In this document: piece after piece, positions 14,251 to 33,500 of the stretch
Position numbering within the stretch: the first letter of the stretch is position 1
How the letters are laid out: each line of letters starts with the position of its first letter
NCBI RefSeq assembly: GCF_964204645.1
Contig: NC_134033.1
Span: forward strand, 12,470,655 to 12,534,654
Length of the DNA: 64,000 bases
Reading direction: 5' to 3'
From: Tubulanus polymorphus
Lineage: Eukaryota > Animalia > Nemertea
The notes under the pieces: generated by a model
Told to the model about the DNA's origin: nothing
The model's database searches: none
Seen by the model: the letters and a program-made list of their open reading frames with translations, nothing else
Translations under genes and position numbers: made by a program

Positions 14251-17200
14251 GTAAGTTGAAATTTGGGTTCGTTTTTGTTTACGTTTACGTATTTTTAGTG
14301 GATAGCTGGCTGACAATTTAGATTGTTTTGTTACCTCAAACCGCCCCTAGGACACTTGGCATTCAACCAAAAATTTTAGGTTCGAGTCCCACTAAATCTA
14401 CCCGCGCATCAGTTTTTTCCTTGGTCACCGAGTCCCGAACAGAATCCGACAGTTCGCGAATCAGAATGTCCGTTACGGTCGAACTACTGAGCGATGGAGT
14501 GATGTAGCATTCCAACACTCACTCGCGGCAGCAGCTGCTGTCAACCTGCAGCAGATGTACTGAGTAAAAAATGGACACAGATAGAGTAATATACTGATAG
14601 CCTAACGATCATTGATGACACATACAACACAAAAGACGAGAAAATAAAGTTTGTAAATGTCATTAGCGACAGTAATTGACGCCTGGGTGCATGTTTAATG
14701 CCTTATGAGTTACATGGCAACCATTAGGCCAAACGAGTGGAGTTCATGGTTTATGACGAGTCACAAAACAAACGTTTTGATTTCTTTTTGAGGTTTTCAC
14801 GCGTCCTTCAATGAAATCTTCAATTGGTGAAATTTCGCTTATCGATTTGGTGCATGTGGACTTCTTATGAAGATGGAGTTGACACTTGATTAACGGGCAT
14901 CTATTATTGTATACATTTTGGATGAGATTGCAGCAAATCTTGATCTTAGTTTGGAAAAATAACGGTAAAATGAAATTGCCAAGTCTTTCGTACTTTTTGG
15001 CCTGTATAACCAACTTCAATACATTACTTGCAATAACTAACTCAACTATTGTTTAGTTTGCAAGCCAAATTTTCGGCATAATCAACTCCTGGGCCCGTTG
15101 CACAGTGTTGTGAATTCAGTCAAAAATTTATCTTATATCTCAAGAGTCTCATGAAGATAGTCTTTAGAATCAAGTTGGTCTTAGACTGGTCTCAAAGTAA
15201 GCGATGGCGGCATCTTAATTAAACAGGTCTAAGTTTGAGCCGGTTCCCGAGTACAACTTATTCACCTCTTTGTGAAACAACTCGTCTATTCGCCTTTGCC
15301 TAAACCGGTTTAGGATCGCGTAGCCGAGTGCTGTTAGATTATTAGCTGACTAACGCATTGACCGCCGGTTGCATCCACAGCGCGAGTTGGATGACGGTCC
15401 TTACGCTTCTCGCGCCCGAGTTTCCTCCCGAATATCGTCGTTATTCCGCATCGTGTTTCATATCGTCTGCCGCGTGCGATGTGTGGCTTTAACTAATTTG
15501 TCGCAGCGCGCGCCGGTGTCTGCGGGCTGTTTATTTCGAATAGCTGATTCATGTGATGTCATTGCGATTGTCCGATTGAATTTGCGGGTGCGCGCGTTTG
15601 CGTGTATCGCGGACCGAACGACGACAATCGCGTCGTCTGATAATCCATACGCTTACCTTACTGATAAACCACCGACCAGCTAAACTGACGACAAACTCTT
15701 CATGTATCTAAATGATAAAATCCGGTTTAAAGTTTGTGAAACCTGGTTTTTCCTCGTTGATAAACTGTTTATCGTAAGTATATCTTACAGAATTACGGAT
15801 GAACTGAGACTTTTTGATGTAATCGGCTTACCCCGCTGATAAACCTGACTACAATTCTGATAAATAATTGATCGATCGTCGAGCTCGGGCTACTGATAAA
15901 CCATAAAAGCTATCTCTACTGAGATTCACTTGAAATCTCAATATCCGTCATGCAATAACGTAACAATCCTACAATTGTGTAATTGAACTAAAACATCAAC
16001 GTTAAAGATATTTTGGGTGGTAACTACTGGAGGACTGTAAAAGGGTTATTGCTTTCGACTCCGCTGGGGCTCGAACCCTAAATTCTACACCACTCGCAAG
16101 GAAGTCTGTCCCCGATTTTATTGAATTCAGCGCTGGACTGGAAGTCGGCGATTGAGTCACCTCGACTCATCGACTACACCAAACTACCAAACGGTAACTT
16201 CGTTATACGGCGCGCGAGGTTTATCGAAAAAACACCCAATTTAGAAAGATATCCGTTTGAAATCTAATCCCCATTGAAAAAGCGGTGATTATTTCTAAAC
16301 AGTTTTCGCACACACAATCGACACCTGAGCGATCAATGGGTGATGAAGTTGAGTCACGCCACAACAGTCGTTATTTGATTGAAGTTTTTTTTGTCTGCTT
16401 ACTCTGGGCCGTTGTTTCACGCGGCCGCGCTGGGATTCGAACCCCTGCTAAAGGGACCGGATGTGAAGCCATTCACGCAACATCACCGTGTAAAATGTAT
16501 CGGAACAAACAGATATTACCCGTTGCATATTCGTAGTTTTGCTGCGGCGAAATATTCATATCCTAATAAACACCATTCTCGATTGGCTGTATATGCGAAT
16601 TGAGAGAGCTTTTTTACTGATGGTATCACGTTAAGATTCATTCGGAAAAAATATCTCCCTCGGACTGGATTTGAACCAGCGACCTAAGGAAGTCAGCTAT
16701 GGAGATGCCACTACAGTCCTCCGCTCTACCAACTGAGCTACCGAGGGAAGATATCAAAATTTTAACGTCTTGAAACTAAATTCGTTTTACTGTCTTGAAA
16801 TCCAGGTGTTGATAATTTCAGTGCACATTATTCCAACCTGTTCATCATAACGAAAAAGAAAATGATAACTTAGTTTCTTTCGGTAGTCTCTTTCGCAGCA
16901 TCCACGTGCAGATAAATGATTTGAATCTTGCACGACTGGGTCAAGAATCGTCTACTTGAGCTCTTCATTTATGGCGGCTTGAATCCAAAGATGTTCATTT
17001 TCTCCATTGTTTCGTTCGTGATATGAAAAAAATTAACCCATAAACCAAAAATAAACGCAATATGAAATGTACAATCTGATCGTTGATAAAGTACAATGGA
17101 GGATATTGACGTTAATCCGGCATATGATATTGACGAAAAAAGAATTTCGCCCTCGGACTGGATTTGAACCAGCGACCTAAGGAAGTCAGCTATGGAGATG

Positions 17201-20200
17201 CCACTACAGTCCCCCGCTCTACCAACTGAGCTACCGAGGGCAGATATTAAAATTGTAACGTCTTGAAGATAAATATTCTACTGATGGCAGGTGTAGACAA
17301 TGGAGTCGTTTGATTCACCTGTTGACGATCATTTACGATTTGGAAATAGAAATACCGTCGTCATAACATCAGTGGGGCTGTTTGGTCGGAGTCACGATAA
17401 CGAGCATCTCCTCATTCCTGTCTGGAGATGTAAGTGGATGGTGCGTTTAGGCGTAGAACTGTGAAGTCTAGATTATCAGTCATGAGATGGTGTTACTTTG
17501 TCGAGCATGTACAGTGGCGTATAACACCGATCGCACCTCTGCCGACCCTTATCGTGGCGCCAGACTTATGATAATGCATGTCTTGCCTTTTACATGATCC
17601 ATGGCATCAAACGTGGACTTTCCATGAATGACCTGTGTCGTGTGTACCTCTAACAAGCTCACCGTGCAATGTCAGGATATGGTTGCATATCTCCTGCCGG
17701 GTATGTACCATGGCATCTAACTCGGAACCTTTGCAGTAGCGGAATGGACCTGCGGCACGGCTGATTGTAACGGTTGATTGCTAACGTTGTACAAAATCCA
17801 AGGTGAAAACAATGATATACACGATATAAAAGATGACGAGATATAACTAATGAAAGTTAACAATAATGAAATCCGCAACTAAGGATTATGCTACGGCATA
17901 ACACATGCAATTTGGTGTCAACGTCAGGACTGTCGGGTCTCTACCACGGTACAGGTGCATGCCAGGTACAGATACAACACTCTCGGTTGTATATTTCTAC
18001 CATTGTGTCGGAAGGCTGCAACTGGCGCGGTGATAACTCTGTATCTCAACGTTTGTTATTGCGGTATAAATGAAGTCATTTCTCGTCGCCCAATTGAACA
18101 ATAAAACACGTGTGTTCTAACACTGATAACTGAATATGCGCTGAACTGGACGAAGCTCATCTATTTTATATTACGCTTAGTTTAACGAACTACTCCGCGG
18201 CAATATGACGCCATACACGACTCGGGCGATATTCATCAAGCGAACGAAATTAACTTATCACCTTATCAGACATCAGAAATCAGGGCTCATTTTGTTTACG
18301 ATGACGTGGTTCTTTACATTCATAACTCCTATTCTGTATACAGTTCATCGTGGACTCTAAAACAAGTCCATCTTTTCCTGATATAAAAATCTCACACCCA
18401 CAATGGAGAATGTCCGGGGTTTCCGTGAGTTAAATAACGATTTATTTCAATCTTTCAACTTCATCACTATGATAGTCATCTCGTGGAGTATTGAATAATC
18501 ATTAAATCAAGAGAACCATGCGAACTCTTTTTTCCTTAGTGCCAAGAATAAGAATCGTCGTTACGACATGGACATATTGTTCCATAGTTATGTTTAGATT
18601 TATATACGTCATTTTAGTCATGTATTTTGTGTATATTCATTGGTTTTGTTTCTTCGATGATATTTCCAGGTCTTCCACCGGTTCCGAATTTCCCGAAAAT
18701 TCGCGAACGCAAAAAAGAGCAGAACATGGTGGAGTTGTTCTGGGAAACGCACACGAACAGCACCGAACCGACTATCTACGTAGTCGAGGCCCGCTGGCAC
18801 GCAGGTCGTGATTTCAGTAACGGGTTGTTAATCGATTGGGCTCCGTTTTCCCTGGTAAGTGACCTCTAATGGCGACCAATAACCTCAAAATATATCCATA
18901 TTGCCATATTGCACACTTTCAATGCGATGTTAAACCCGAAAACGTATTAAATTTTTCCCAAATTTGATTTTAACTCCAGTTCCATGGTTTAAATCGTGGC
19001 TATACAATTCTATACTAATCTATGACTTTCGTGATAAGTTTGCTATACAGTTAACCTCGCCTGAACGGCCATGTTCGAGTAAGGCGAGGTTTGCTGTATC
19101 TATTTGATCGTAAAATATCCGCACTTTCGTCGTGCGGAAGCTAAATATTCAGCGAGTGCGGTGCTGCCATCTGCGAAAATAACTCGGAACTAAAATCCAG
19201 CGCAATTCATTGATGCAGGGAAGTGTGATGTTCTCATCACACTTCCCTGATTGATGTAATAATTTTCTCGTCAATAAAAATTCGAATGAGAAGGGGATCT
19301 TGAAATCATCGCCATTTAGAAAATGTACTTTATGGGGGTAAATTATTAAAATAGTTTTTATCCGTAGGTTAATTTTGTTAATTTACTGACGGATATATGG
19401 AATGCTTGATAATTACAATCACGCTGTATTCGTATCACACGGGATCGACAGTTTCAGTACGAACTGAGGGAAATAGGAAATATACGAACGCTTCATTTCA
19501 ATGAATTAGAAATATATCACGTTAGACGCATGGGACGAAAATACTAACCTGTCGATTGTTTCAAAGATTCACACCTCGAATAGTTGCTAGAATATTGCTG
19601 TAAAATCTCATTATCTGCCTTATTCCATTCGTCTGTCCGATATCCGACATGAGGGAAACTCGCGGATTACAGCGTGGCTGTTGTTTCATAGATTTTCATT
19701 ACATTTTTACTGATACTAATTACGTGGCTTGATTATCGGTTTTGTTTTAAATGACTAGATAATACCGACGAATTGAAAAAAAACCAATTATCTTTTTACG
19801 AAATAAATGACATTTTTGTAAAAGGAAAATGAAGAGTATTTGGTGCGTACCGCAAATCTAAAATTAAATGAATGTACGAATAAGTCGGCTACGACTTGAC
19901 TGTAATTACAAATCATCGCCGGATTTATACGTAAACCGATGAGAAACGGATTCACATCACAAGGCAAAGAACGATATTTTTTTTACTCGACTCATCGAAA
20001 TGATTATTTGTCTTTCTTTCAGACGACGAAACCTTCGATAATTTCACAAATCGAACCGGGAAAATGGTTTATATTTCGGGTAGCCGCCATCAGTATGAAC
20101 GGGAGTCTGGGTTTCTCTCCGGAATCACCGCCATTCAGATTGTCATTAGGTAAGCGACGCATTTCAGAAGACTCGCTCAAGAATACCAAACGGACGAAAT

Positions 20201-23200
20201 GATATATAGATTGGTTTTACGCCTAATTGATGTATAGTTAGGTTTTGAACCAACGAATATATTGCTCAACTGTGTGTCAGAAACATGTTTCTCGAAAACA
20301 CAATATTCTAAAAATAAATGTTGAAGTTCTCAATGTCGCTCAAATGCGATGGAAATAACCCTCAATTCGTTATTTTGCTAACGCAATATGTAGTAGCATT
20401 GTAAAAATTTACAAGTAAAATCAGGACTGTATTTTACGGTTTAATATGTGCTGTTGTTTTCAGAGCCACGAGTGCCGGGTCAGCCGATGAATTTAACGGA
20501 AGGTGAGACTACGATTCACGACGGGTTGATTGATAAACAGATTCGCTGGTCACCGCCCGCTTACAGCGATATTCCTGTCACTAGATTCAAAATATTCTGG
20601 AGTAAACGACTGCGCGGTGTCAGCCCGATGTTGGTATATATGGAGGAACATAAACAGATCATACCGGCTGTAAGTAAATCTGTGTTGACCGAATGGATTT
20701 GGTTTTTTCAATTATCAAAATTATATGGTCAAGAATTTTACAAGGTTTTATATATTTTTTTTACAAGATAGCGCAATTATAAAATACCAGGGCACCCAAA
20801 ACCAAGAAATCCCCCACCCCCACTCCACTGGTGGTCTGAACTCGACTCCAGACAAGTTCCACAGTTGTGTAGATCTAATTTGACTCTGAATCCAGTTGGG
20901 TTCATTATTCGACTCTAGGCCAAGTTCCACAGTTGTAGGATTCAATTTTACCCTGAACCCAGTTCCACGTCCAGTTAGGTAGACGTCTGACTACGGGCCA
21001 ATTTCCACAATTGATAAACTAGCGTTTGGTGAAAATATATACAACATGTCGTATGAATCTTTCGTGTATAATGTTTAAAGCGTCATGTTTCTAATCATTC
21101 AGGATCAGTTCACGTATACGTTGAAGGACATGGAGCCGGACACGACGTATTTCGTGCAGGTTCAAGCGGTTTGTCATTACGGCGAGGAACGTCTGAAAAG
21201 CGAACGAGCGTCGATTTACATCGTTACAGAACCGTTAATTACAAACAACGACAAACAACAAGGTACAAATACATACCTCATAACACAGTTGGAACAACGA
21301 GAATTTAGAAACCTCATCAGATTTAGAGATGGAACCGAGATTATCCGAATTATCCGATTATAATCCATTCAATAAGATTTTAATTACACAATTACAAAAT
21401 TCTTATGGTAGACTTCAATACTAGAGTCAAATGATTGATAAAAATCCACAACAAAATCACAACAATAATGATATTCTTCATTGAGAATAGTATATTCCGA
21501 TACGATCAATTTCACATCGATTATTTCACATTATTTCGGCTGAAGTGACTCAGTGAAATCGATCGTGTTGTAATATATATTTTCAAGGATGAATTTCGTT
21601 ATTGTTGTGATTTTGTGGTGTGGCTTTATCAAACATCTAATGGCCCCAGGACGCTTTATTGAGTATCCAATTGAATAAAACTTTCAAATTACGCCTAATA
21701 CATTTTTTACTCGTTATATATACAGAGTCTCCGGTACATGTCGACGCCGCAGTTATGGGTCTACCCACACCTCCGCCTTTACGCAACGTGACTGTCGACA
21801 AACCTTTCTACGAAAATGGACTACTCAAAGCAACCATACACTGGGTTATACCGAGCGGTACGTACATGTTGCGATACGAAATTCGACAAATAACACGAAA
21901 CACTGAGTATGTCAGTTGGTAGCGTGGCCGAGCGGTCTAAGGCGCCGGTTTAAGGCACCGGTCCAGCAATGGGCGTGGGTTCGAATCCCACCGCTGCCAC
22001 ATTACTTTTTCCTTAGTTTCCTGACTAAAAACTGTTTTGGTCCTTGAAAATCAAATTCTATGTGAAACATTTTTACTAGATTTCCCATACTATTGACATA
22101 GAATATCAAATTCCGTTAAACTGTCAGCCGATATTCCGATGTTTTCTCCTTTTCCAGATTTAGTTAGTTATTAGTCGGTAATTAGTGTGGACATCGGTAG
22201 TCATGGTAACGATCACTTGTTGCCGCGTCGAGTACCCGGATATAAGTGCGCGTTGTCTCAGCCCATTAGTTATAGTAGATAGACAATAAATAGTACACGT
22301 CGTGCACTTTTACCCAGAAGTGTCATCGTATCGACGACATTATGATTATTTCGACGGATCAGTTGACAGAATTTCTATACCCGGCTCGAATCTTAAATTT
22401 CTCGGAAAAATAATACTACTGCGGTCAGAATTTGTGATTCATCGTTGTTAGTGTCCCATGTGCAAAAGTATGGCTCCATTGTAAGTTCCTCCTATGAGAC
22501 CAATGATTTGTGAAGCGAGTGCCGATTGGTTCATAATCTCGGGATCTCAGCCGACTGACCAATCAGAAGAAAGATAGCTGAAACTGTTTCTTCTTCATTT
22601 CATGATTTTCTAAATATTTCTATCGCGGTCATCATTTGATTAAAGTTGTATTTTTTTTCATTTTTAGGTCATAAAGAAAAAATCCATAAATTCTTGATAC
22701 ACTGGACGCCTGATGTCTGCATCGCAATGGCAACACTGGACGGTCCTCTATCAAAAACGATATCAGCCACAACGCATGTAAGTTAAATACTGGATCTCCA
22801 CAGAACTCCTCTGGCAGTCGAGGAATCCTTCTTCGGCATTCGAGGATCCGCCAGGGGGAGTTGTTGTGGATGTAATAATTTTCATCTCAAACTATCGAAC
22901 GAATGTTCTATAATCATTTATCTTTTTTCTCTTTCTCCAAAATGTATCTACAGACGAATGAGGTTAGATATTCAAATATATGTACATTATTTGCATGTTG
23001 TGTGACACGCCCCTTCTGTACCTCACCCACCGTTCCTCGCTAGGGGTTCGAATCCCAACCGACCATCACAATAATACTCTAGATTGTGCTCACCGATTTT
23101 TTTTGTGTCAAGTTTTTCTTCAGCAGTAAAACCCGCAACACGAACGTTAATTCTTACATTTTTGAGAAAGGATGATAATTCAAATATCCCAATTTCAGTT

Positions 23201-30460: not shown

Positions 30461-30577
30461 TCACGTATTGCTATCGTCTTTATAATGCCGGAATTCCGCT
30501 TTCAATTCCCACATGTTTTTATGCGGCTGTTTCGTGTTGTACGTGCAGAATTCCTTCAGAATTTCTTTCAAATACGT
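30461..30577 (-). CDS. GTF2F2: GTF2F2 exon 7 (last)
   Basis: TYLKEILKEFCTYNTKQPHKNMWELKAEFRHYKDDSNT*. Confidence 0.93.
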   Translation of the reverse strand, partial: TYLKEILKEFCTYNTKQPHKNMWELKAEFRHYKDDSNT

Positions 30578-33500
30578 CTGAAATGAAAATTCGCGAGCGT
30601 TCAGAACGCGTGACATTTTTACTACAAACAACACCTAACAATACCGGTAACAGGATAAGAATTGTTTATTGCCTGTAGATAATTAACCTTACTGTGAACT
30701 GGCTCCAGAATATAAGATACTATATTAGTTTATTTCCAATGTCCTAACCTTATCACTTCCACCCAGTACTGGCTACAGGATAACAGGATTTTATATAGTG
30801 TATATCAGTTTTTTTCCCACGACTCTAACTTAGAACTGGCCCCAGGATAGTCAAACACTGCTTCAAAAATACCACACTTTCTACTACAGCGGCTTCCGGC
30901 CTCTCTATACTTACAACTGGTTGCTTGGTTATCGTGACCAAGTCTTTGATGTTGTAATATTGATGTTTCTCGAACGCCGAAAACAACATTTCCATAACGA
31001 CATCTTTATCCGACCTCGCTCGCTTGCCTTCTTCTTTCTTCTTCAAATCGTGTTCAATCTGTCGAACAAAAATAAACATAAGGTGACATCATTAAAACAC
31101 CTGATCAACCCTTGCGATTCTATATAGGAGCAGCCGGTAAGTCGTACTGTGCATTATCTGCAAACTAGTGACACCTGGTGGATTCTCACTTGCGACAAGA
31201 AGAATTCCCTATTGCTACGCTAATTGATGTCCTATGTCCACTAGCACGCCTGGTGGATCCTCACTTGCCCTGTGAGGAATCCAAGTGTAACAGGAAGAAA
31301 TTTCTGTCCTTCCCGAGATTCGAACTCTCGATGTCTGGCGTCCAAAGCAGACGCTCTACTGCTGAGCCAAAGGGAATATTCCCGCTAGCCGAGCTAGTAG
31401 GAACGCTGTTATACAGTCTGTCACACTCACCCCCTTCTTGGAAGTACAAGTCCTCATGTCGTGATTCCCTAAGGTGATTGACATTACCACTCATGACGAC
31501 TGTGGGACGACATGAACTTGGACCCAGAGTTATCGCAGAGATGGACGAGCCCCCAAATGTAACAGGAAGAAATTTCTGTCCTTCCCGAGATTCGAACTCT
31601 CGATGTCTGGCGTCCAAGGCAGACGCTCTACCGCTGAGCCAAAGGGAATATTCCCGCTAGCTGAGCTAGTAGGAACGCTGTTATACACTTTGTCACACAA
31701 GCCTGCTGCCACTTTTCAGACTAGTGACAAAGGGGGGACTAGCGAATTCCATTAAGTAGAACTTTAATAGAAGACTTGCTACAAACCACTTTCAGGGACT
31801 ATATCCCTGGCAAATATGGAGTCTTAACTTGTATAATTCAATTAACTAAGAGTAAGTCATCGTTCGGATAAACCATCAACCTAATGATCGTCCTAACTGC
31901 GACGAGTTTGACCGCACAGAAACATTTAGAACCAGTTCGAGTCAACTTCACAAAATCAAAGCGTTGAATTTTATGAAAGAATTTTGAAAATTCACGAAAA
32001 ATAGAAGAAAAAAGAAACGGGAAAAACGACAACGAAAATGAACCGAACGATTTTCAGCGAAATCAACGAATCCGATTGGAAATGATACGATGTACCTGGA
32101 TTTTGAAAAGTCGACCTGAATAAACAGCAGCGTGCTACAAGTAAGTGATAATAAGCGGCCACCCTGAATGAGTAGTAGGTAGATAGAGAAGCGATTCAGC
32201 TACGATAACGAAACTTACGTTGAATCTATGATTATTAACCGGTTTATACGCGTTGTGAATCTTATCGAGTTGTATGACTTCGCGTTGCGGTTTATTCGTT
32301 TCTTCAATCTGTTTCCTGCAAAATAATCAAACAACAATAAAAATCAATGTTTACGACGAAGACGTAAAGTCGAACTTGATGTAGCTATCGATAAAAAGCA
32401 GCCTGTGATTGGCCTCTTCATACATTCATCAGTTGCTGGGTGAAATTTTGATGGTAATTTTTTTGAAAGTGTACTGATATATAAATATGTTATGTCTGGT
32501 GGTTCTTAGTTCATTTCCAACTAAAAACATCCGACACAAAGTTCTAAACACATGCGATACCTTTCTTCGCGATCGAAAGTTGGAATGAAGTAAAATAGCG
32601 ATAAAGTATATTGCCTTGCTTTACATCATTTGAATAGCTATTGGATTTTAACAACCTCATGACAGGACAATGTTTGAAGTGTTGCCCGCACGCTGTAAGC
32701 AGCCAGCAGGACTCGAAACCCGCTTGTCATTCAGTACTGATAGTGAATGCCACAGAATCACGGCTTATACCACTGAGCTACTGAGGCTGCTGTGTGAGAT
32801 GGTGCAGGATCCAGGCAGCACCAGCATGAGAAAAATTAAATATCTCGATTCATCGGACGTTAGAACGTGAAAAGATAACAAACCTTTTTAGATTCATGTA
32901 GTTTTTATCGGCCATCGGGCGACATTCCGCACGTTGGATGACTTTACCTTCGACGCTGACTTTTTCTGAAAAAAAATTTAGAATTGATTCTTCAGTTAAA
33001 CGATTGAACGCGAACAATTTTTAATTCTTGGGTTGAACTTTACTGGACAAACAGGGCTCGAACTGAGGGCATCTCGGCTTAAGGTGTGGAATGGGGTCAA
33101 ATTTAATCACATGGAACTGGATCCGGAGTCAAACTAAACCCACAGAACTGTAGAACTGAAAAACTGGTTTCAAACAATAAGTTTCAATTTGGTGATGTCG
33201 TAGTGGGGATCTGACAAGGCAGCCATGTTTCAACTGAATTCAAGAATTAATCTCACCATGATTAGTTTCGGTAAGAATCGACAGGTTCTGATTGGCTATA
33301 CCGGTCAGGACGAACTTATGATCTTTCGGTACGGGAGTCTCTCCGGGTCTCTTCTGCAGCTGAAACAGCGTATCGTCCAGCGTAAACACAACCTCCGGTT
33401 TACCGCCAGCTATCCTTAGAAATATAACCAAATAAATCATCGTTAATAATAATCGCAATACATGTAATAATTTCATCATGATTTATCATTTCTATTAGCA

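Follow-up and report, generated by a model that had tools for sequence, protein, structure and literature searches.

A kind of non-autonomous LTR retrotransposon (TRIM) with tRNA-derived sequence in its LTRs was described by Kojima in 2024 as Helenus, or TRIMp3. In animals, these elements are flanked by 4-bp target-site duplications (TSDs), bivalve families have a primer-binding site (PBS) for tRNA-Pro, and Gypsy elements act as partners (PMC10886601). The class is made up of LTR retrotransposons that apparently carry a tRNA-derived Pol III promoter in place of a Pol II promoter. The relatives used for comparison here are Helenus-2_NGe and -1_NGe of Notospermus, Helenus-1_LiLo of Lineus, Helenus-1_CGi, -2_MiYe and -5_PeMa of bivalves, and LTR1/LTR2_LCh of the coelacanth (PMC10886601).

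A stretch of 64,000 nucleotides of the nemertean Tubulanus polymorphus (NC_134033.1, positions 12,470,655 to 12,534,654; hereafter the window, whose numbering is used throughout) contains a 412-bp element on the minus strand, which is a full-length copy of a TRIM. The best explanation is that it is a TRIM of the Helenus/TRIMp3 kind, mobilised in the way proposed below, a reading to which a probability of roughly 0.85 can be given. Judged by its sequence, the element represents a new family of a known kind: the Helenus kind was described in 2024, and the novelty is at the family level only.

Structure of the element and its place in the host gene

The element has the layout LTR-PBS-interior-PPT-LTR, and its features are listed in Table 1. 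Like other TRIMs, it is short (<1 kb), non-coding and bounded by two direct terminal repeats; no protein-like ORF beyond mechanical ones was found in the whole 412 bp. The two exact LTRs differ by five mismatches and no gaps (3.6%). A repeat finder gives 146 nt at 96% for the pair, where the extra length consists of chance matches in the flanks. The PBS next to the 5' LTR and the polypurine tract (PPT) next to the 3' LTR are both as expected of a TRIM, and both are kept in other full copies. An earlier note on this DNA had described the 140-bp TG..CA repeats with their five mismatches, the CAAG duplication, the 13-nt PBS, the PPT and the 132-bp non-coding interior, and all of these details were confirmed. 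Its wider claim of a complete miniature LTR retrotransposon is upheld by the tRNA-Pro-type PBS, the PPT and the 4-bp TSD. The note had also placed the insertion in sense in an intron of the GTF2F2 (TFIIF-beta) gene, which the flanking exons bear out through a match to the TFIIF_beta domain.

Table 1. Features of the element and of the surrounding host gene, in window coordinates.
Feature	Position	Strand	Remarks
Next host exon	30488-30580
Host exon downstream of the element	30915..31019	-	TFIIF_beta domain positions 1-35
Target-site duplication, left copy	31282..31285		CAAG on +, CTTG in element orientation
3' LTR	31286..31425	-	140 bp, TG..CA
tRNA-like block of 3' LTR	31309..31376	-	Rfam tRNA model 1-71, 21.5 bits, gathering 29
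Polypurine tract AAGAAGGGGGTGAG	31426..31439	-	Abuts 3' LTR; conserved in other full copies
Internal region	31426..31557	-	132 bp, non-coding; PBS at 5' end, PPT at 3' end
Primer-binding site TGGGGGCTCGTCC	31543..31555	-	13 nt; 2 nt (TT) past 5' LTR
5' LTR	31558..31697	-	140 bp, TG..CA; read loose ends at both borders
tRNA-like block of 5' LTR	31581..31648	-	Rfam tRNA model 1-71, 24.3 bits, E 0.037 (2-kb search)
B-box-like GAGTTCGAATC	31589..31599	-	~43 nt downstream of A box, tRNA-gene spacing
Predicted long imperfect hairpin around palindrome GGGAATATTCCC	31620..31680	-	-30 kcal/mol, z -4.0
A-box-like TGGCTCAGCGG	31631..31641	-	10/11 match to TRGCNNAGTGG
Target-site duplication, right copy	31698..31701		CAAG
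Upstream host exon ORFs	32850-33017 and 33240-33479

The tRNA-like block and a possible promoter

The Rfam tRNA model aligns end to end on the minus strand in both LTRs, at scores below the gathering threshold. The best score across the family copies is 25.7 bits, so that every copy remains below gathering. The D arm GCTC-AGCGGTA-GAGC, the loop CTTGGAC and the B box are present as the earlier note described them. The consensus of the A box is TRGCNNAGTGG, and the two box sequences TGGCTCAGCGG and GAGTTCGAATC, about 43 nt apart, are nearly invariant across 20 LTR copies. The block is a decayed tRNA relic and not a working tRNA. A scan with Rfam of positions 30500-32500 gave tRNA matches only, and 5S rRNA-derived sequence was absent from this region.

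The chances are about even that Pol III transcribes the element from a promoter inside the tRNA-derived block, in which the A and B boxes are spaced as in a tRNA. In that case LTR positions 1-49 would form U3 and R would begin near position 50; the T-run at about position 126, with three Ts here versus four to six in most relatives, would act as a weakened terminator. A T4 terminator for Pol III is found nowhere in the 412 bp, so that transcription by Pol III would lack a defined stop at this copy; TTTT is expected about 1.9 times in 412 nt from the base composition, and its absence from one copy is not significant on its own.

The strongest competing view is that the element is an ordinary Pol II-driven TRIM, in which the block is an old SINE or tRNA relic in U3/R that has no promoter role, and that its RNA comes either from a Pol II promoter within the LTR or from read-through of a host gene, for example the TFIIF-beta gene in which this copy lies in sense. 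The likelihood of this view falls somewhat short of even. The tRNA-like block is indeed decayed, as this view would have it, but of its tRNA features the A and B boxes have been preserved best, at a spacing like that of tRNAs. The sense orientation of this copy within an expressed-type gene and the absence of a T4 terminator also agree with Pol II, whereas the 50 nt that precede the block showed neither a TATA-like sequence nor any other feature of a Pol II promoter. The A-box region is sequestered by the upstream arm of a strong hairpin in the predicted fold, which favours Pol II, yet the tRNA block is kept in the Helenus LTRs of distant phyla while the remaining LTR diverges. The Pol III function of Helenus was itself reported as unvalidated by Kojima in 2024 (PMC10886601), which leaves room for the Pol II view.

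It is very improbable that the LTRs encode a functional proline tRNA (anticodon UGG), and that the element thereby spreads working tRNA genes. In the loop CTTGGAC, TGG takes the place of an anticodon, flanked by U33 and A37, and tRNAs are predicted for a few Helenus of fungi and bivalves (PMC10886601), but ARAGORN finds no tRNA in either LTR and, as stated above, no copy reaches the Rfam gathering score. Aligned to the Rfam model, the block has an acceptor stem of five pairs, two positions being deleted, a broken T stem and a bulge in the anticodon stem. When folded alone, it forms no cloverleaf (z -1.2). Anticodon aside, its sequence is unlike the 3' half of the host tRNA-Pro. Two ARAGORN hits elsewhere in the window, reported as 'tRNA-???' at 16655-16748 and 17148-17241, were considered as a second tRNA-LTR element and rejected, as they are two ordinary intron-bearing tRNA-Tyr(GTA) genes.

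Copies in the genome and the proposed mobilisation

The genome gave 37 matches. The assembly (268 Mb) contains at least five interiors, one LTR-I-LTR-I-LTR tandem array and about 25 solo LTRs, and interiors are present solely between LTRs. Perfect 4-bp target duplications were found at 14 of the 16 evaluable independent insertions, where chance would give about 1 in 256 for each; duplications of fixed length flanking dispersed copies are what is expected of TRIMs. The family recurs genome-wide with precise ends and 4-bp duplications, and the element is therefore not a chance arrangement. Whole-genome reads gave a depth of about 175 for the LTR and about 40-55 for the interior against about 6 for the unique flank, and in these reads the other copies part from the locus exactly at 31697/31698 and 31557/31558. 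An origin other than as a retroelement, by duplication in place or from the adjoining 77-bp satellite, can be dismissed. The element does lie inside two units of this abundant satellite, but the satellite sequence ends at the target duplication, and the PBS and PPT are at their canonical places. Such an origin is refuted by the copies dispersed over at least 10 contigs, which have the same ends and 4-bp duplications in unlike flanks.

The multi-copy family with consistent ends and 4-bp TSDs that the earlier note had anticipated was thus found in the genome. Its description of the insertion as fairly young was an overstatement, as the LTRs are 3.6% apart, in every copy the two LTRs differ, and there was no sign of an empty-site allele. 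The joint 31285->31698 of an empty site was absent among the joints listed for the reads of another sample, a result of little weight given that the unique depth was only about 6. Three matches to positions 1-155 of the element were considered as 5' ends of an autonomous element and rejected, as they have neither ORFs nor a TSD; what they represent is a divergent solo-like LTR, present in three copies through duplication and continuing into TTCGGCGCC... A pattern search for other families with the palindrome-plus-A-box core recovered only the present family.

The PBS TGGGGGCTCGTCC can pair with the 3'-terminal 13 nt, ...GGACGAGCCC+CCA, of a host tRNA of the tRNA-Pro type. Eleven host genes, presumably for tRNA-Pro, end exactly in GGTTCGAyTCCCGGACGAGCCC, a sequence known as the 3' half of tRNA-Pro. 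Ty3/Gypsy elements with the same type of PBS are present in this genome and encode a PNMA-type gag, RT, RNase H and integrase, with reading frames that are fragmented in the copies examined. Five Gypsy-type loci carry ACA-TT/AT-TGGGGGCTCGTCCGGGAG, and so share the PBS region with the element, as the Gypsy partners of Helenus do. One such family has an LTR with ends similar to those of the element, starting with TGTCACAGGTTGT and ending with CCGTGACA, and a G-rich PPT. When the whole element was compared with the five loci by blastn, only 16-19 nt of LTR end and PBS (ACA-TT-PBS) were common to them. A search for an autonomous partner that shares the PPT and the LTR start, with AAGGGGGTGAGTGTGACAG at up to three mismatches, also gave no candidate: apart from the known copies, matches were no more frequent than with a reversed-pattern control. 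Of the autonomous partner primed by tRNA-Pro that had been suggested earlier, the presence of such Gypsy elements in the same genome therefore stands, but no specific intact partner emerged, the frames being fragmented and the likeness limited to the LTR end and PBS.

Mobilisation may be pictured as follows. Transcription would begin in the 5' LTR and run into the 3' LTR or past it, and a Ty3/Gypsy element that uses tRNA-Pro as its primer would provide, in trans, for the packaging and reverse transcription of this RNA. The minus strand would be primed by tRNA-Pro at the PBS, and the plus strand would start from the PPT. The integrase would recognise the TGTGACAG...CTGTTACA ends; target duplications of 4 bp are typical of Ty3/Gypsy-type integrases. 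Recombination between LTRs could then give rise to the solo LTRs and arrays.

Helenus and other known systems

The earlier note's comparison with Helenus proved exactly right, and the element fits the definition in PMC10886601. Its 4-bp TSD agrees with Table S1 of that study for animal Helenus, and its LTR contains tRNA-derived sequence with conserved A and B boxes, albeit at sub-threshold Rfam scores. The kind itself was described in 2024, and the suggestion of a possibly undescribed family holds only at the family level: test strings from the interior and LTR are absent from DataS1 of PMC10886601.

By eye, the LTR core appears to match the Helenus LTRs of nemerteans, bivalves and the coelacanth, a likeness that comes from visual comparison and exact shared 11-16-mers. 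The core TTCCTACTAGC...GCTAG.GGGAA..TTCCCTTTAGCTCAG..GGTAGAG is also present in Helenus-1_LiLo, -1/-2_NGe, -1_CGi and -2_MiYe. The palindrome GGGAATATTCCC is common to the element and LTR2_Lch, where it lies within a long similar stretch, and ...TTCCTGTTACA is common to the LTR ends of the element and the published consensus sequences.

The upstream arm of the LTR hairpin repeats the tRNA 5' half in inverted orientation and can pair with the A-box/D-arm region. A hairpin with such an arm goes unmentioned in the main text of PMC10886601. By eye, the pairing is CTAGC/GCTAG here versus CCAG/CTGG in Helenus-2_NGe and CTGAC/GTTAG in LTR2_Lch, GGGAA/TTCCC here versus GGGTT/AACCC in Helenus-1_CGi and GAGAA/TTCTC in Helenus-3_MiYe, and CG/CG here versus CA/TG in Helenus-1_LiLo. 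The shared LTR module upstream of the tRNA relic, and a hairpin of about 60 nt seemingly kept by compensatory changes, hint that the Helenus of nemerteans, pteriomorph bivalves, the coelacanth and this genome could form one lineage and not independent captures of SINEs, a tentative idea with the odds leaning against it. If it is true, the origin would be very old or horizontal transfer would have taken place between phyla. The hairpin, if its pairing has indeed been kept, would be a functional cis element, for example in packaging or dimerisation, strand transfer or the gating of a Pol III promoter. The shared core and hairpin, if formally confirmed, would bear on whether Helenus had a single origin or multiple origins.

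With this locus, a class of mobile elements defined only recently gains a well-delimited family, for which full copies, an array and solo LTRs are available together with clean 4-bp duplications. The small size of the family makes it a tractable case for testing Pol III transcription of Helenus. LTRs of this sort are also a source of false tRNA-like matches and of dispersed Pol III/TFIIIC-type sites inside genes.

Compared with published Helenus, the 412 bp of the element fall within the 314-580 bp of the lophotrochozoan families (506-510 bp in two coelacanth families), and its 140-bp LTR falls within 104-199 bp. Features in common are the TG..CA ends, the 4-bp TSD, a PBS that corresponds to a tRNA 3' end, a G-rich PPT, the tRNA-derived block with A and B boxes, and the occurrence of tandem arrays and solo LTRs. 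By eye, the LTR core is common to them as well, with CTAGC...GCTAG, the GGGAA..TTCCC palindrome, then TTTRGCTCAG..GGTAGAG and the LTR end given above. Helenus-1_TeGr also has a PBS for tRNA-Pro, and the same TTTGGGGGCTCGTCCA is found at the start of Helenus-1_TeGr-I. Apart from the shorter T-run, the differences are that the interior and LTR are family-specific, no published family having the dimensions 140/132/412, and that the B-box region is more decayed here (GAGTTCGAATCTC versus GGGTTCGATCCCC).

Cassandra, a plant TRIM, also forms tandem arrays and has LTRs with the relic of a small-RNA gene whose internal Pol III promoter has a putative counterpart here. Unlike the present element, it uses 5S rRNA instead of tRNA, and, in contrast to the promoter role proposed here, its Pol III transcription and terminators were shown experimentally. 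PbTRIM of ants and biv-TRIM of bivalves are likewise short LTR elements without coding capacity, and they too leave behind solo LTRs and tandem arrays. They differ in that no tRNA-derived LTR block is mentioned in the accounts consulted, and biv-TRIM has no canonical PBS (PMC6934838), whereas the PBS of the present element is clear. The tRNA-derived SINEs (SINE2) depend on LINEs for their mobilisation, lack LTRs, a PBS and a PPT, and have TSDs of variable length, in contrast to the fixed 4 bp found here; they too are non-autonomous, and they begin with a decayed tRNA whose A and B boxes act as an internal promoter, a role that the block in this element may share.

Structure, insertion site and dispersed copies

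The structural claims of the earlier note were all correct. The element consists of two LTRs that differ by five mismatches and no gaps over 140 bp, with a PBS, a PPT and a 132-bp interior without coding capacity. TFIIF-beta exons on one side and exon-like frames of the same protein on the other lie on the minus strand, and therefore the element is intronic and in sense orientation, in agreement with its proposed insertion in a GTF2F2 intron. The insertion site falls within a 77-bp satellite, here about two units long; elsewhere this satellite is arranged in long arrays on contigs 6, 9, 10, 8, 22 and 71 (more than 170 matches), with a read depth of 15–30 times the unique level and tandem "goes back" joints in the reads. 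Two tRNA-Tyr(GTA) genes in the window, each with an intron and almost identical to each other, lie at a distance of 493 bp and are labeled "tRNA-???" by ARAGORN; like the tRNA-Leu(AAG) gene of the window, they are ordinary genes and not LTR-borne.

The genome search and copy count proposed in the earlier note were made with the 412-bp element against the 268-Mb assembly, after which LTR and interior were re-mapped separately. There were 37 matches, which include full copies, a tandem LTR-I-LTR-I-LTR array (second interior shorter by 4 bp) and about 25 solo LTRs; interiors were found solely between LTRs. Inspection of the flanks revealed a perfect 4-bp target duplication at 14 of 16 evaluable independent insertions (in element orientation: CTTG, TATC, TAAG, TATA, TATA, TCTA, TTCA, CCAG, TAAG, TACT, CTGA, TTAA, TTCA and TTTA). 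In raw whole-genome reads of another sample, the depth was ~175 for the LTR, ~40–55 for the interior and ~6 for the unique flank, corresponding to ~25–30 LTRs and 7–9 interiors. Reads from other copies part from the window locus precisely at 31697/31698 and 31557/31558. Since the copies are dispersed, the duplications are of 4 bp and the reads break exactly at the LTR borders, the element is a bona fide LTR retroelement, and a local duplication is ruled out.

In the contig 2 copy, LTR positions 54–63 stand on either side of the foreign sequence, and this 10-bp repeat looks like a duplication from a secondary insertion. Perfect hairpins at three loci cut from the assembly match miRNA-precursor models on both strands, far under gathering scores. 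These hairpins lie near solo LTRs and are probably palindromes of MITE type.

No LTR pair compared was identical in any copy of the family, and solo LTRs are 81–98% identical to the 5' LTR of the window copy. The insertion had been called fairly young, a reading for which LTR divergence gives a time scale only with a host substitution rate. No empty-site allele at the window locus was seen among the joints listed for the reads of the other sample, where unique depth is only ~6.

Features of the element, its surroundings and related loci (window positions unless a locus is named; L, locus cut from the assembly; G000, the 268-Mb assembly; C, contig)
Feature	Position	Strand	Remark
LTRs, 140 bp each	31286-31425 and 31558-31697	-	TG start, CA end in both; pair divergence 5/140 (3.6%)
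Target duplication CAAG	31282-31285 and 31698-31701		both sides of element
PBS TGGGGGCTCGTCC	31543-31555	-	after 5' LTR + TT
PPT AAGAAGGGGGTGAG	31426-31439	-	immediately before 3' LTR
TFIIF_beta domain exons	30915-31019 and 30488-30580	-	
Upstream exon-like frames	32850-33017 and 33240-33479	-	same TFIIF-beta protein
77-bp satellite	31132-31293 and 31700-31740		core ACACCTGGTGGATTCTCACTTGC...
tRNA-Tyr(GTA) genes	16655-16748 and 17148-17241	-	
tRNA-Leu(AAG) gene	21918-22000	+	
Tandem array	L002 1501-2180 = G000:C4:21016908-21017587		single TATC duplication flanks whole array; pair divergence 2-7/140
Full copy	contig 10		pair divergence 9 differences + 6-bp deletion
Full copy	L005 1772-2256 = G000:C2:8921011-8921766		~337 bp inserted in 5' LTR
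Rearranged copy	contig 11		
Divergent LTRs	L021, L022, L023 1501-1638 (G000:C6, 18.67-18.79 Mb)		three identical copies
28-bp tandem-repeat arrays	L051 8802-9069; L048 1195-1472 and 2377-2710		
Perfect hairpins	L007 2253-2321; L019 2779-2881; L002 884-978		

The tRNA relic and proposed transcription

The tRNA-like block that had been described for each LTR, with D arm, A box, TGG loop and B box, is present in full. Both LTRs give a full-length alignment to the Rfam tRNA model on the minus strand, with 24.3 and 21.5 bits; no copy of the family reaches the gathering score of 29 bits (best 25.7). The D arm is perfect (GCTC AGCGGTA GAGC). Some 43 nt separate the A-box-like TGGCTCAGCGG from the B-box-like GAGTTCGAATC, the spacing of tRNA genes, and both motifs are almost invariant across 20 aligned LTRs. 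In the Rfam alignment, the acceptor stem keeps five pairs, with two positions deleted, the anticodon stem is bulged and the T stem broken; in the loop CTTGGAC, UGG would fall at the anticodon. The block is the relic of a tRNA, and its boxes are promoter-like. A tRNA gene was rejected on the sub-gathering scores, the damaged stems, the lack of an ARAGORN call in the element LTRs and the fold of the block alone, which is no more stable than its shuffles (z -1.2).

Helenus elements are TRIMs whose LTRs hold tRNA-derived sequence, and together with Cassandra and Ajax they form TRIMp3 (Kojima 2024, PMC10886601). According to that paper, transcription of Helenus by Pol III has yet to be validated. 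In the present element, Pol III would transcribe from the relic; U3 would then be about LTR 1–49, R would start near position 50, and the T-run near position 126 would be the counterpart of the T4–T6 runs that most published Helenus LTRs have at this position (Data S1 of PMC10886601). This run is TTT in 20/20 aligned copies, and TTTT is absent from the whole 412-bp element, so that no canonical terminator sets the 3' end. With TTT instead of T4–T6, a transcript of the 5' LTR could more readily continue into the interior. Judged from the sequence, the odds of a Pol III origin of the genomic RNA are about even, against an origin from Pol II or read-through.

Primer tRNA and possible Gypsy partner

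The PBS is complementary to ...GGACGAGCCC plus CCA. The T arm and acceptor 3' strand, GGTTCGAyTCCCGGACGAGCCC, has 11 exact sites in the host genome; this sequence is known as the 3' half of tRNA-Pro. The PBS of murine leukaemia virus is identical (tRNA-Pro type).

A genome-wide pattern of LTR end plus PBS returned the TRIM copies and, at 1–3 mismatches, other loci, and five PBS-Pro loci were cut out for ORF analysis. In four of the five, the PBS strand carries frames of at least 150 aa, split into several pieces at each locus; L048 has no such frame. A domain scan of L050 and L052 identified PNMA-type gag, RVT_1 and integrase, with RNase H in L052 too, in Ty3/Gypsy order. Gypsy elements primed by tRNA-Pro and matching tRNA genes occur in the same genome. 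The PBS of these elements reaches further, to TGGGGGCTCGTCCGGGAG, and they have just 16–19 nt in common with the TRIM (ACA-TT-PBS). Arrays of 28-bp tandem repeats lie shortly 3' of their PBS.

The low-copy L051 family (12 genome matches) has an LTR that starts with TGTCACAGGTTGT and ends with CCGTGACA, preceded by the PPT AGTGGGGGAGGA; the TRIM counterpart is TGTGACAGGGTGT...CCTGTTACA after ...GGGGGTGAG. This likeness of termini is suggestive of a partnership rather than proof of one. In the 3' LTR of L051, TTCAGTCGGTAGTGC resembles a tRNA D arm.

The earlier note had looked to autonomous elements sharing PBS-Pro, PPT and LTR ends. PBS-Pro Gypsy elements and the similar termini of L051 were found, but no intact copy was seen among the loci examined, and a genome-wide pattern search for the junction of PPT and LTR in the TRIM itself gave nothing beyond control level. 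The family shows the cis signals needed for LTR retrotransposition, has integrated repeatedly with 4-bp duplications and has left products of LTR–LTR recombination; the element would have been mobilized in trans by a tRNA-Pro-primed Gypsy element. In kind, the earlier note interpreted the element correctly; transcription by Pol III and the role of a partner are inferred.

Comparison with published Helenus families

In animals, Helenus insertions are flanked by 4-bp duplications, solo LTRs and tandem arrays are known, Helenus PBS regions are shared by Gypsy elements only, tRNA-Pro is among the primers of bivalve families, and multiple origins are favored (PMC10886601). The element was compared with Data S1 of that paper visually and through exact matches of short strings. 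The coelacanth LTR2_Lch contains GGGAATATTCCC and a stretch very like the element LTR (ATAACAG..CT.CTAC....T.AG.TAGCGGGAATATTCCCTTT.GCTCA......TA.AG.GTCTGCCT); the Helenus-1_TeGr interior begins with TTTGGGGGCTCGTCCA; and several bivalve LTRs end in ...TTCCTGTTACA, as does the element LTR. The core TTCCTAC.AGC...GCT...GGGA...TCCCTTTAGCTCAG..GGTAGAG was found in Helenus-1_LiLo, Helenus-1_NGe, Helenus-2_NGe, Helenus-1_CGi, Helenus-3_SaGl, Helenus-2_MiYe and Helenus-5_PeMa, and Helenus-2_NGe has GGTTCGAATCTC....GGACA.TTTTCTTC.CT.GTTACA in common with the 3' part of the element LTR. Other test strings from the interior and the LTR string CCCTTTGGCTCAG are absent from Data S1, and no tabulated family has the dimensions 140/132/412. 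From this comparison we conclude that the element belongs to the Helenus kind, probably to its lophotrochozoan/coelacanth lineage, as a family outside this data set.

The divergent LTRs on contig 6 (~86% identity) lack a target duplication, and their surroundings look like a segmental duplication. The sequence after them, TTCGGCGCCTGTCC, is less like PBS-Pro than like a decayed PBS of the TGGCGCCC type, that of the Helenus-1_LiLo and Helenus-1_CGi interiors; these LTRs may be a sister family.

LTR positions ~18–78 fold into a long hairpin with imperfect pairing (-30 kcal/mol, z -4.0, zero shuffles folding as well). In it, the segment 5' of the relic, CAGCGTTCCTACTAGCTCAGCTAGCGGGAA, repeats the tRNA 5' half, TTCCCTTTGGCTCAGCGGTAGAGCGTCTG, in inverted and diverged form. 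Within the Tubulanus genome, compensatory change was seen at 2/46 predicted pairs, the copies being too alike to reveal covariation. By eye, the layout is also readable in published nemertean, oyster, scallop and coelacanth Helenus LTRs, where changes in both arms appear to preserve pairing: CTAGC/GCTAG of the element is CCAG/CTGG in Helenus-2_NGe and CTGAC/GTTAG in LTR2_Lch; GGGAA/TTCCC is GGGTT/AACCC in Helenus-1_CGi and GAGAA/TTCTC in Helenus-3_MiYe; ..CG../..CG.. is ..CA../..TG.. in Helenus-1_LiLo. The words hairpin, palindrome and inverted are missing from the main text of PMC10886601. This apparent hairpin conservation and the putative cross-phylum LTR core, both from by-eye comparison, are the sole points beyond the literature consulted. 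Of the "possibly undescribed family" in the earlier note, the family stands as new, but its kind was described in 2024; the novelty is that of a new family, perhaps in a new host, within a known class.
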